Shown here: positions 3,081-4,347 of the stretch, in pieces | How the letters are laid out: each line of letters starts with the position of its first letter | Position numbering within the stretch: the stretch's first letter is position 1 | Program-made: the position numbers and the translations under genes | IMG/VR virus record: IMGVR_UViG_3300029911_000001 | Span: 62,001 to 126,000 of that record | DNA length: 64,000 nucleotides | Reading direction: 5' to 3' (one strand) | Notes under the pieces: generated by a model | Seen by the model: the letters and a program-made list of their open reading frames with translations, nothing else | What the model was told of the DNA's origin: nothing | Database searches by the model: none

Positions 3081-3311
3081 TTATCTCCCGTAACGAGCTT
3101 GTATCCCATCTATTACTCTGAGACAGCGGACTCTACGGCGGAGCCAGTTGCGTGCTGCGAATTTCTTTCCAGTGTTCTTGGGCAGGTTCAAGAGAAGAGA
3201 ATACTCGGAGGGGTCATAGCGGTGATAGCTGACACCGTACCCTCTCCCGCGAAACTCTAAAATTGCCCGGTTGCACCGTTCTGCTAACGTCATCTTTGCT
3301 GTGACTTTCAT
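3081..3311 (-). CDS. Hypothetical basic protein (first gene after the putative attenuator)
   Basis: Start moved to ATG 3311 (MKVTAKMTL) because of a GGAGAGGG RBS. Confidence 0.6.
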   Translation of the reverse strand: MKVTAKMTLAERCNRAILEFRGRGYGVSYHRYDPSEYSLLLNLPKNTGKKFAARNWLRRRVRCLRVIDGIQARYGR

Positions 3312-3320
3312 ACCCTCTCC

Positions 3321-3350
3321 AAAACACCAAAGCCGCCCTGTTGGGCGGCT
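3321..3350 (-). terminator. Intrinsic terminator of the putative attenuator
   Basis: AGCCGCCC-AACA-GGGCGGCT followed by TTGGTGTTTT (imperfect U-tract). Confidence 0.65.
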
Positions 3351-3377
3351 CGTATACATCGAAGAATTTTTGACTGG

Positions 3378-3464
3378 TTAGTCTTCAATCCCTCCGCACA
3401 CGAAGCCGCAGACGCTGGTTTGCGTTGTGGTAGTTGTAATTCGTGTTTGAGCGGAAAGACGCAT
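3378..3464 (-). CDS. Thr/Ile-rich leader peptide (28 aa, thrL-like)
   Basis: MRLSAQTRITTTTTQTSVCGFVCGGIED*; the run ATT ACA ACT ACC ACA ACG uses all four Thr codons; the 3' half can pair with the terminator 5' arm. Confidence 0.7.
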   Translation of the reverse strand: MRLSAQTRITTTTTQTSVCGFVCGGIED

Positions 3465-3493
3465 TTTCAGAATCCGGTATTCCTATGGTATTT

Positions 3494-3633
3494 TGGTGCC
3501 GGAGGACAGGTTGCCCTATCACTCCGGCTTGGAGCCCTATCCAAGTTTGACCTCAGGTAGGGCATGGCCCGGAAGGTAAATTTTACTTTACCTCCCAGAT
3601 GGTGGCTGAACTAAGGTCTCCCTCAGTCCAACC
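3494..3633 (-). ncRNA. Array of four tRNA-minihelix-like RNAs, each ending in NCCA
   Basis: Units 3600-3633, 3565-3598, 3530-3563 and 3494-3528; 11-13-bp hairpins plus discriminator plus CCA; 1-nt spacers. Confidence 0.8.
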
Positions 3634-3643
3634 GTCTACATAC

Positions 3644-3673
3644 ATAATACACACAAAGTCAGAAAAGTGAACA
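3644..3673 (-). promoter_or_regulatory. Putative promoter for the minihelix/attenuator/tRNA transcript
   Basis: TGTTCA-N18-TATTAT, same spacing as the other copies in the window. Confidence 0.65.
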
Positions 3674-3738
3674 CTTATTTTTGAATTATTCGGAAATATT
3701 ATTCTGGCAGTGCTCCCGGATGATTTTGATGGCATCTT

Positions 3739-4347
3739 TCACCCGTTGTTTCTCGGCCTCCGTGGTGCAGGTCGGCAGGACTTGCTGACCGGTCTTACGG
3801 ATACCCGCCATGACGACTGCAAGGTGGTGCTCAGCGTAAGGATGCTGTCACGCACCGTGCTCATGACGTGGGTATCGTTGGCCGCATCCGTTGCACGGCT
3901 GGAATCAGGGTAGATGAGTCCGGTACCAGTGCGGTCAGTGCGATGACCGACAAGCTTCACGCGACTCTTGTGGTAGTCGCTGCTAACCCACACAGTACCA
4001 CGTTCCTTCAAACCGGGCAGAGTCCATACATGGGCACCCCACAGGAATCCCAAAAATTCCGAAGATTCCTCGCTGGCAGGAGCATAGTCCCTATAAGTCG
4101 CTGCCATCACGTTATTATATGCCGGGGCATCGTCAGGGTGCAGCCACATGTTGGCGACGAGGAGGTTGTCCTTGTGGATTTCTCCGAAGGCGTTGGCAAG
4201 CATAGCAATAGAGAACACCTTAGGCTCCATAGCATCGAGGGGGAAGACATAGCTGTGGTAGCCCCTATCGGAGGCAAGGAGTTTAGGAGCGACAGCGAGA
4301 GTTACCCCTGCGGCACCGGCTGTGAGAAGGAACTTACGACGGTTCAT
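3739..4347 (-). CDS. Hypothetical protein with twin-arginine (Tat) signal-like N-terminus
   Basis: MNRRKFLLTAGAAGVTLAVAP after a GAGG RBS; the C-terminal third looks atypical. Confidence 0.6.
   Translation of the reverse strand: MNRRKFLLTAGAAGVTLAVAPKLLASDRGYHSYVFPLDAMEPKVFSIAMLANAFGEIHKDNLLVANMWLHPDDAPAYNNVMAATYRDYAPASEESSEFLGFLWGAHVWTLPGLKERGTVWVSSDYHKSRVKLVGHRTDRTGTGLIYPDSSRATDAANDTHVMSTVRDSILTLSTTLQSSWRVSVRPVSKSCRPAPRRPRNNG

Follow-up and report, generated by a model that had tools for sequence, protein, structure and literature searches.

A conserved leader with isoleucine and threonine codons and a predicted switchable terminator upstream of tRNA-Ile and tRNA-Thr genes in giant uncultured phages

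Leader-peptide attenuation is a textbook mechanism for the control of amino-acid biosynthesis operons. In the Escherichia coli thr operon attenuator (thrL; Rfam Thr_leader), a short leader peptide rich in Thr and Ile codons is combined with an intrinsic terminator and mutually exclusive 1:2, 2:3 and 3:4 pairings, and ribosome stalling at the control codons favours read-through. T-box riboswitches also control transcription through a terminator/antiterminator choice, but they do so by binding a specific tRNA directly. Phages, for their part, encode tRNAs that bypass tRNA-targeting immunity: phage tRNA-Thr rescues cells from P2 OLD and from PARIS AriB (PMC12445682, PMC12409363), and the anticodon nuclease HepS cleaves tRNA-Thr(GGT) most, then Thr(TGT), Thr(CGT), Ile(GAT) and Ser(GCT) (PMC13043305). 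Here we analysed a 64,000-nt stretch of the IMG/VR virus record IMGVR_UViG_3300029911_000001 (referred to as the window), in which a leader resembling that of the thr operon lies ahead of the phage's own tRNA genes.

A preliminary description, made from the sequence alone, had reported a 28-codon leader with a Thr run, a terminator hairpin, a helix competing with it and tRNA-Ile and tRNA-Thr genes downstream, and our analysis confirms all these elements, which lie on the minus strand. The ORF (3464–3378), with its ATG at 3464–3462 and its TAA stop codon at 3380–3378, encodes MRLSAQTRITTTTTQTSVCGFVCGGIED, a peptide with seven Thr residues, and is preceded by a Shine–Dalgarno core, GGA (3475–3473), located 8 nt before the AUG. 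The control codons ATT ACA ACT ACC ACA ACG (3440–3423) comprise one Ile and five Thr codons and cover all three Thr isoacceptor classes. The antiterminator would be formed by (i) segment 2, whose core GCGGCTTCGTGTGC lies at 3409–3396, and (ii) segment 3, whose core GTATACGAGCCGC lies at 3357–3345 and overlaps the 5′ arm of the terminator; they form 13 pairs with U3404 bulged, and an additional G3395–U3358 pair makes 14 (segments GCGGCUUCGUGUGCG, 3409–3395, and UGUAUACGAGCCGC, 3358–3345). The upper part of this 2:3 hairpin (3394–3361) holds the leader stop codon in its apex. Segment 1, ACACGA (3446–3441), can pair with UCGUGU of segment 2 as the anti-antiterminator. The intrinsic terminator (3351–3321) consists of a 9-bp stem (7 GC) with an AACA loop, GAGCCGCCC/GGGCGGCTT at 3351–3330, followed by an interrupted U-tract, TTGGTGTTTT, down to 3321. 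The 153-nt leader folds better than shuffled sequences (z −3.8), and the whole 323-nt unit folds much better (z −9.1). Note that a run of five or more identical residues is found in 4 of the 484 small ATG-initiated ORFs of the window; the Thr run by itself is therefore not beyond chance, and the weight of the evidence comes from conservation and context.

No Rfam family covers the region, either at the gathering score or at E up to 10 (the latter on positions 3200–3800), the NsiR4 and RNAI hits corresponding only to the terminator hairpin; in particular, neither Thr_leader nor the T-box model matched. A blastn search against 50,697 GenBank phages gave no match, and a scan of 185,579 reference genomes, bacterial and archaeal, with the leader pattern gave no hit, so that there is no evident host source of the leader.

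Comparison with relatives supports the element. Six diverged, although fairly close, variants from metagenomes (individual lineages other than that of the window are referred to below as L004, L015, L024, L042 and L043) keep an ORF of 26–28 codons with the core MRL(S/T)xQTRITTTT(T)QTS, an (A)GGA sequence 6–9 nt before the AUG, which is only GGA in the window lineage, and ATT followed by four or five ACN codons. Five of the eight variable sites in codons 1–16 are third positions, and the three lying outside codons 4–5 are all third-position and synonymous; codon 3 uses all four CTN codons and codon 10 all four ACN codons. Besides, the extra Thr codon in the window is an in-frame 3-nt indel, and the stop codon is kept at the same structural position. 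Importantly, the flanks diverge much more than the element: the upstream protein is 63% identical at the amino-acid level and the downstream gene is replaced in the window lineage.

The terminator is conserved, with 98% of cells paired and two pairs showing compensatory changes, for example G–C to A–U in L042. For the antiterminator, 92.5% of cells are paired, against 23–57% for slid controls; however, covariation is weak, since only six one-sided changes that keep the pairs were found, without any two-sided compensatory change, and L042 uses a shifted register (GGUGGC:GCCACC). Likewise, the ACACGA:UCGUGU helix is present in all variants (92–100% of cells paired), but its columns are invariant, and it is dominant in the minimum free energy fold of L015, L042 and L024 only.

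To examine whether the control codons are suitably placed, we first computed equilibrium probabilities of the full terminator with a masked ribosome. This proved uninformative, as the pair set included outer A–U pairs and the terminator hairpin stays stable at full-length equilibrium in most modelled states, so the switch must be kinetic. We therefore applied a ribosome-footprint model to nascent transcripts, assuming a footprint from −15 to +12 nt around the first base of the A-site codon. The terminator 5′ arm is sequestered (P 0.67–0.97) with the A site at any codon up to the last Thr of the run, segment 2 being left free, and this probability falls to 0.06–0.47 two to three codons later in all six variants. 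In L015, L042 and L024, the arm is also free without a ribosome (0.14–0.47), as in textbook superattenuation, whereas in the window, L043 and L004 the antiterminator is thermodynamically favoured even without a ribosome (P 0.82–0.89), so that their default state may be read-through.

The leader is preceded by a σ70-like promoter, TTCACT-16-TATTAT (3671–3644), whose −10 block GTATTAT is kept in all variants, with TTGAAA or TTGCAA as −35 in L015 and L024. Between this promoter and the ORF lies a large structured 5′ domain that the preliminary description had missed. In the window, this domain (3633–3494) is a tandem array of four 11–13-bp hairpins (3633–3604, 3599–3568, 3563–3534 and 3528–3498), with loops GAGA, GUAAAA, GUCAAA and GCAA, each followed by (N)CCA, a shape that resembles a tRNA acceptor minihelix. 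The array folds with a z of −6.8, and 23 of 37 pairs show compensatory double changes across six variants. Altogether, stems are 11–15 bp long and 22 of 23 hairpins are followed by (N)CCA, the stems covarying while the CCA, which is internal in the primary transcript, is kept. No other such tandem array was found in the window or in the related loci.

Downstream of the terminator, the first gene is a protein gene, which the preliminary description had also overlooked: a 76-aa ORF without family (3311–3081) starts 10 nt after the U-tract. It is found only in this lineage and is absent in L004, L015, L024 and L043, where a DUF6915 gene follows directly; in the variants, the next gene starts 10–15 nt after the U-tract. 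The DUF6915 gene of the window (3078–2733) is split by a frameshift into 39-aa and 88-aa ORFs. The AlphaFold model of DUF6915 was unusable (pLDDT 47.6), and no sequence relative was found in the PDB. The tRNA genes that follow are two tRNA-Ile(GAU) (2727–2651 and 2648–2574), the first with a non-canonical anticodon loop, CCGAUUA, then tRNA-Thr(CGU) (2000–1918, 83 nt), with an HNH endonuclease gene upstream at 2517–1996, tRNA-Thr(GGU) (1692–1617) and tRNA-Gln(UUG) (506–420, 87 nt), which has a long extra arm and reads CAA, the Gln codon used twice in the leader core. An ATP-dependent ligase-like gene (1348–749) matches phrog_548 'RNA ligase' (E 7e-9). Its 199-aa product is a nucleotidyltransferase-only protein with motifs I, III, IV and V (KYDG, TEFFG, EGVVAK and KIKT), which are invariant in three lineages; 70–74% identical homologues lie after the tRNA blocks of L015 and L024. 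No kinase or phosphatase was recognised, and a sequence search of the PDB with the ligase gave only chance hits.

Noteworthy, in all four lineages with enough downstream sequence, the next RNA genes are two tRNA-Ile(GAU) followed by tRNA-Thr (CGU/UGU/GGU), and an RNA-ligase-like gene follows in the three lineages whose sequence reaches that far. No promoter-like site was found between the terminator and the tRNAs, although phage-specific promoters cannot be excluded. Two DUF6915 homologues without nearby tRNAs have no leader. Of the 39 ligase-linked loci retrieved from viral contigs of related megaphages, the leader occurs only in those with a dedicated Ile/Thr block; in these loci, the Leu, Pro, Met, Phe and Tyr tRNA blocks have neither a leader with a cognate run nor a hairpin–NCCA array.

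Taken together, these data support the reading put forward in the preliminary description, namely a ribosome-mediated transcription attenuator with Ile/Thr control codons in front of the phage's own tRNA-Ile and tRNA-Thr genes. It would lie at the head of an operon encoding a small DUF6915 protein, two tRNA-Ile(GAU), several tRNA-Thr (CGU, UGU, GGU), tRNA-Gln(UUG) and an RNA-ligase-like enzyme. We consider this element real and probably functional, with reasonable but not full confidence, given that translation, termination and the trigger are inferred from sequence without experimental evidence. In this model, host RNA polymerase would start at the σ70-like promoter and transcribe the hairpin-rich 5′ UTR and then the leader, on which a ribosome loads. 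If charged tRNA-Ile or tRNA-Thr is plentiful, the ribosome would run through the Ile–Thr run and cover segment 2, leaving segment 3 free to form the terminator with segment 4, and transcription would stop at about 3325–3321. If those tRNAs are scarce, the ribosome would stall on the run, which would melt the 1:2 pairing and leave segment 2 free to pair with segment 3, so that the terminator 5′ arm is sequestered and the polymerase reads into the tRNA genes. The products of the operon being the very molecules sensed, the circuit would be self-limiting.

The most likely physiological trigger would be the loss of host tRNA-Thr and tRNA-Ile to an anticodon nuclease of the HepS type. That the trigger is a host tRNase, given as an example in the preliminary description, remains an inference, the host being unknown and the presence of a Thr/Ile-directed nuclease speculative, but it gained support from the literature, since the HepS targets correspond to the encoded tRNA set plus the invariant AGC codon 16 of the leader. 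The same attenuator could instead respond to ordinary supply and demand, measuring whether the Thr/Ile decoding capacity of the infected cell meets the needs of the phage and shutting the operon off once enough phage tRNA has accumulated, without any host nuclease. The self-limiting design fits this possibility, and so do the large tRNA arrays grouped by amino acid of related megaphages, which fit general codon-supply functions. We nevertheless regard it as the less likely trigger: besides the coincidence with the HepS target list, each anticodon is present in two copies, one copy having a non-canonical anticodon loop that is conserved across lineages (for example Ile CCGAUUA, with C33 and U37), a ligase gene is kept next to the block and no similar leader precedes the Leu, Pro, Met or Phe blocks of the relatives.

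Readings that dispense with attenuation appear weaker still. The unit from promoter to terminator could be a stand-alone gene for a stable structured RNA, possibly also encoding a small peptide, with a constitutive terminator and downstream genes expressed from elsewhere. Its very stable fold, the strong covariation of the 5′ array and the stability of the terminator in equilibrium folds are in line with this view. In addition, the post-array linker is complementary to the U-tract in most variants, which could close and stabilise a terminated RNA; this long-range pairing was seen in most minimum free energy folds, with one compensatory change between lineage groups, although duplex energies beat shuffled sequences in only 2 of 6 variants. 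However, the short distance to the next gene leaves no room for a promoter, no promoter-like site was found on that strand before the tRNAs, the helix competing with the terminator 5′ arm is kept and third-position variation shows that codons, not only structure, are under selection. We thus hold this explanation to be unlikely, while noting that the two readings are compatible, since the attenuated short RNA could be stable and functional as well. It is even more doubtful that the ORF is untranslated and that the region is a structured 5′ UTR regulated by RNA processing (for example by RNase P or RNase III at the hairpins) or by a protein, the Thr codons being a by-product of RNA-level constraints such as ACAACGC-loop-GCGU and AAACACGA:UCGUGU. 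Admittedly, much of the conserved core is also base-paired in predicted structures, the nucleotide invariance of CAAACACGAATTAC and ACAACGCAAACCAGCG goes beyond what coding needs and runs of five identical residues are not rare among small ORFs of the window. Yet the synonymous variation, which samples all four nucleotides at two codons, the in-frame indels, the Shine–Dalgarno spacing, the fixed position of the stop codon and the match between the Ile, Thr and Gln codons and the anticodons encoded downstream all argue against it.

The 170–250-nt structured 5′ UTR has no role in the classical attenuation model. One speculative and, in our view, improbable possibility is that the transcription unit is a two-part counter-defence RNA. 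The array of three to five minihelix mimics would be cut out by RNase P and trimmed to free minihelix–NCCA RNAs of about 12–13 bp plus NCCA, one per array resembling the tRNA-Thr acceptor stem GCCGG. These would act as decoys or sponges for enzymes that read the acceptor end of tRNAs, such as toxSAS pyrophosphokinases like FaRel2 (which accepts minihelix substrates and selects tRNA-Thr and tRNA-Gly), CCA-end nucleases or nucleotidyltransferase toxins, while the leader behind the array would sense anticodon-nuclease damage by ribosome stalling and switch on nuclease-resistant replacement tRNAs and a ligase. Independently of this scenario, the NCCA-tagged array is an unexplained RNA feature that may be new in its own right.

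We found no description, in the open-access papers and preprints searched, of leader-peptide attenuation in front of tRNA genes, or in a phage as a sensor of tRNA supply. If the element, of about 330 nt, works as proposed, phages can measure the decoding capacity of the infected cell codon by codon and deploy replacement tRNAs only when needed, phage tRNA carriage would be linked mechanistically to tRNA-targeting immunity (HepS, OLD, PARIS) and the control codons of such leaders would give a sequence signature for predicting which host tRNAs are under attack. With respect to the phage tRNA sets that bypass such immunity (T5 tRNAs against PARIS AriB, phage tRNA-Thr against P2 OLD, HepS targets; PMC12409363, PMC12445682, PMC13043305), the locus shares phage-encoded tRNA-Thr and related tRNAs with altered anticodon arms, which here would replace cleaved host tRNAs; those tRNAs are not reported in these papers, as far as we read them, to be under a stall-sensing leader, whereas here the tRNAs appear to sit behind one. 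Like T-box riboswitches, the element would sense the state of a specific tRNA, but a T-box has no leader ORF. Finally, compared with the E. coli thr operon attenuator, whose short Thr- and Ile-rich leader and intrinsic terminator, and perhaps alternative pairings, have counterparts here, the element is phage-borne, carries a 140–250-nt hairpin array ahead of the leader and precedes tRNA genes, a ligase-like gene and DUF6915 instead of biosynthetic enzymes.

The preliminary description, which proposed an attenuator sensing Thr and Ile upstream of phage tRNA-Ile and tRNA-Thr genes, proved correct in every statement it made about the sequence. On the - strand, the leader runs from an ATG at 3464 to a TAA at 3380–3378 and encodes MRLSAQTRITTTTTQTSVCGFVCGGIED, with the run ATT ACA ACT ACC ACA ACG at 3440–3423; GCGGCTTCGTGTGC (3409–3396) can pair with GTATACGAGCCGC (3357–3345), and the terminator-like hairpin GAGCCGCCC/GGGCGGCTT (3351–3330) is followed by a T-rich tail extending down to 3321. 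The tRNA genes found downstream on the same strand are Ile(GAT) x2, Thr(CGT), Thr(GGT) and Gln(TTG). Upstream lie a suppressor-type tRNA with anticodon CTA (5396–5323, - strand; called 'Pyl' by ARAGORN), which is present upstream of the leader in every related locus, and a phage-borne permuted (two-piece) tmRNA (9774–9374, - strand) with the tag ANSNVALPIAA. Note that a Thr run in a small ORF is not in itself remarkable, since four of the 484 ATG-ORFs of 15–60 codons in this window contain a run of five identical residues; the question was therefore settled by comparison with related sequences.

The leader sits in a 427-nt gap between a 213-aa ORF (4380–3739, no family) and a 76-aa ORF that starts at 3311, 10 nt after the T-tail. 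A sigma-70-like promoter (TTCACT-16-TATTAT, 3671–3644) opens the gap, and four strong hairpins (3633–3498) lie between the promoter and the leader. The 323-nt unit from promoter to terminator folds far better than shuffles (z -9.1), while the leader part alone gives z -3.8. Downstream, everything is on the same strand and tightly packed: the 76-aa ORF, a DUF6915 gene split by a frameshift (3078–2959 and 2999–2733), two tRNA-Ile, an HNH endonuclease, two tRNA-Thr, a ligase-like gene (1348–749) and tRNA-Gln. No promoter-like site was found on this strand between the terminator and the tRNA-Ile genes. The DUF6915 gene is interrupted near FKKFG/LHRF, giving a 39-aa and an 88-aa ORF, and the same split is called in independent metagenome contigs; it could reflect a pseudogene, a programmed frameshift or a shared assembly error.

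No match was found in GenBank phages, but the same phage occurs in many metagenome contigs of up to 231 and 432 kb. Diverged homologues of the element were recovered in three ways, namely through a 63%-identical homologue of the upstream protein (locus L004), by a 16-mer scan of IMG/VR (loci L015 and L024) and by searching the metagenome collection with a degenerate codon pattern (loci L042/L044 and L043/L045), giving six distinct variants in total. Their leader peptides are MRLSAQTRITTTTTQTSVCGFVCGGIED in the window, MRLSVQTRITTTTQTSVCGLVCGENQD in L043, MRLTCQTRITTTTQTSVRGLVCKEKD in L004 (where the leader ends in TAG), MRLTSQTRITTTTQTSGGGIVVSGTEFD in L015, MRLTSQTRITTTTQTSGGGNVSGTEFD in L042 and MRLTNQTRITTTTQTSVLRPRVFVRI in L024. 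The same pattern found nothing in 185,579 reference bacterial and archaeal genomes.

The variation observed among these six leaders is that of a translated ORF whose N-terminal half is selected and whose C-terminal half is shaped by RNA structure, as in classical leaders. In codons 1–16, the variable sites are at codon positions 1, 2 and 3 in the ratio 2:1:5 and, outside the two variable residues 4 and 5, all three variable sites are third positions and all are synonymous. Codon 3 uses CTT, CTA, CTG and CTC, whereas codon 10 uses ACA, ACC, ACG and ACT. The extra Thr codon of the window is a clean 3-nt indel, and L015 and L042 differ by another in-frame indel. An (A)GGA lies 6–9 nt before the AUG in every variant, and the stop codon always falls in or next to the apex of the 2:3 hairpin. 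Noteworthy, the run of each variant contains codons for all three tRNA-Thr isoacceptor classes.

The terminator is kept in all six variants, with 98% of cells paired and two compensatory pairs, for example G-C to A-U in L042. The antiterminator put forward in the preliminary description is kept at 92.5% of cells, against 23–57% for slid registers, but its six changes are all one-sided (G-C to G-U); in L042, the G-to-A change in segment 3 is accommodated by a shifted partner, GGUGGC. A 1:2 helix, connecting ACACGA of codons 7–8 with UCGUGU of segment 2, and a small hairpin over the last Thr codons are present in all variants but are invariant, and hence uninformative for covariation. The structural support for the switch is therefore conservation, not covariation.

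We then modeled nascent transcripts ending just before the terminator 3' arm, using a ribosome footprint from -15 to +12 nt around the A site and allowing no pairing across the ribosome. In all six variants, the terminator 5' arm is sequestered (P 0.67–0.97) while the A site is anywhere up to the last Thr of the run, and it is released (P 0.06–0.47) two to three codons later. In L015, L042 and L024, the arm is also free in the absence of a ribosome (0.14–0.47), because the 1:2 helix holds segment 2. In contrast, in the window, L043 and L004, the antiterminator wins even without a ribosome (0.82–0.89); termination in these lineages would need a ribosome running to the stop codon, which sits inside the 2:3 hairpin. 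At equilibrium on the full-length RNA the terminator is stable, so the decision must be kinetic, as in known attenuators.

As regards the genes that would be controlled, the DUF6915 gene starts right after the terminator in L004, L015, L024 and L043. It is intact (120–129 aa) in L015, L024, L043 and L036, the last being a locus from another phage. The 76-aa ORF of the window is a lineage-specific insertion, and L042 has an HNH homing-endonuclease gene (350–934) inserted directly after the attenuator terminator; the HNH gene of the window (2517–1996, - strand) is inserted at a different point, between the Ile and Thr tRNAs, and its end overlaps tRNA-Thr(CGT) by 5 nt. In all four lineages with enough sequence, the RNA genes that follow are two tRNA-Ile(GAU), then tRNA-Thr: the two tRNA-Ile(GAU) are followed by Thr-CGU, Thr-GGU, Gln-UUG and Thr-UGU in the window, by Thr-CGU and Thr-GGU in L043, by Thr-CGU, Gln-UUG, Thr-UGU x2 and Thr-GGU x2 in L015, and by Thr-UGU, Thr-CGU, Thr-UGU, Thr-GGU x2 and later Gln-UUG in L024. 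The conserved leader core Q-T-R-I-T4-5-Q-T-S uses CAA, ATT and ACN, the codons read by those tRNAs. A 70–74% identical ligase-like gene with motifs I, III, IV and V follows the block in the three lineages whose sequence reaches that far, and no promoter-like site was found between the terminator and the tRNAs in L015 or L024.

As controls, two DUF6915 homologues in other phages (L036 and L038) have neither tRNAs nearby nor a leader; note that the homologue of L038 (5001–5400), an AT-rich 97-kb phage contig, has several in-frame stops after about 78 codons in the standard code, which may indicate a truncated gene or an alternative genetic code. Among 39 ligase-linked loci of related large phages, the leader occurs only where a dedicated Ile/Thr block exists. 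Related megaphages (IMG/VR contigs L059, L066, L067 and L068, 84–456 kb) carry the same ligase gene inside tRNA arrays sorted by amino acid (Tyr x2, Leu x5, Pro x4–5, Met x3–4, Phe x2), but no cognate leader peptides were found in front of the Leu, Pro, Met, Phe and Tyr blocks of the relatives.

The preliminary description overlooked the 5' domain. The 5' UTR (3633–3494 on the - strand in the window, and upstream of the leaders of L043, L004, L015, L044 and L024) is a tandem array of three to five hairpins of 11–15 bp, mostly capped by GNRA tetraloops. Importantly, 23 of 37 pairs show compensatory double changes across the six variants, so this is a selected RNA structure. Twenty-two of 23 hairpins are followed immediately by (N)CCA, and these linkers are conserved while the stems vary. 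The geometry, about 12 bp plus NCCA, is that of a tRNA acceptor-T minihelix, which is probably the minimal RNase P substrate. One hairpin per array begins GCCGG and ends CCGGC-N-CCA, like the tRNA-Thr acceptor stems of the same phages. Such tandem arrays occur nowhere else in the window or in about 650 kb of related loci, although an isolated 18-bp hairpin followed by UCCA lies just downstream of tRNA-Gln (331–289, - strand). Possible roles of the array are RNase P processing, stabilization of the 5' end, or decoys for enzymes that act on the tRNA acceptor end. The linker after the last 5' hairpin (CACCAAAAUACCA, 3497–3485) is complementary to the terminator U-tract (CUUUGGUGUUUUGG, 3332–3318), and the other lineage group has AAGCAUUAAG with CUUUAGUGUU, which is one C-G to U-A double change. 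This long-range pairing appears in most folds, but it is not significant, the duplex energy beating shuffles in only 2 of 6 variants.

What would trigger such a switch? tRNA-Thr is a recurrent target of anti-phage systems. HepS, a prophage HEPN anticodon nuclease, cleaves tRNA-Thr(GGT) most, then Thr(TGT), Thr(CGT), Ile(GAT) and Ser(GCT) (PMC13043305); P2 OLD destroys tRNA-Thr(UGU) and is bypassed by phage tRNA-Thr (PMC12445682); and FaRel2 pyrophosphorylates the CCA end of tRNA-Gly and tRNA-Thr and accepts minihelix substrates (PMC11245113). The HepS list equals the tRNA set behind the leader, plus the invariant AGC codon 16. Moreover, the phage tRNAs are odd in ways that suggest evasion. Each anticodon comes in two copies, and one tRNA-Ile(GAU) (2727–2651 in the window) has the anticodon loop CCGAUUA (C33, U37) in all four lineages, next to a canonical copy. 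Thr(GGU) copies have loops UUGGUAU or UUGGUAC; Thr(CGU) (2000–1918 in the window), and one Thr(UGU) in L024, is 83–86 nt with an 11–15-nt variable loop; Gln(UUG) (506–420 in the window) is 87 nt with an extra arm; and some anticodon stems have 4 or 6 pairs. All encode their CCA. These observations make the nuclease-triggered switch suggested in the preliminary description plausible, but it remains an inference. The host is unknown, and plain supply-demand feedback would use the same circuit.

In conclusion, we consider the attenuation mechanism likely, although translation and termination are inferred and the trigger remains open. Searches limited to open-access papers and preprints found no description of a leader-peptide attenuator in front of tRNA genes or in a phage tRNA cluster, so the claim of novelty is provisional. 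The element probably works like the thr, trp, his and pheST attenuators, although it is not a member of any Rfam family. It differs from them in three ways: its cargo is tRNA genes and a ligase, it lies in giant uncultured phages, and it has the minihelix array in its 5' UTR.
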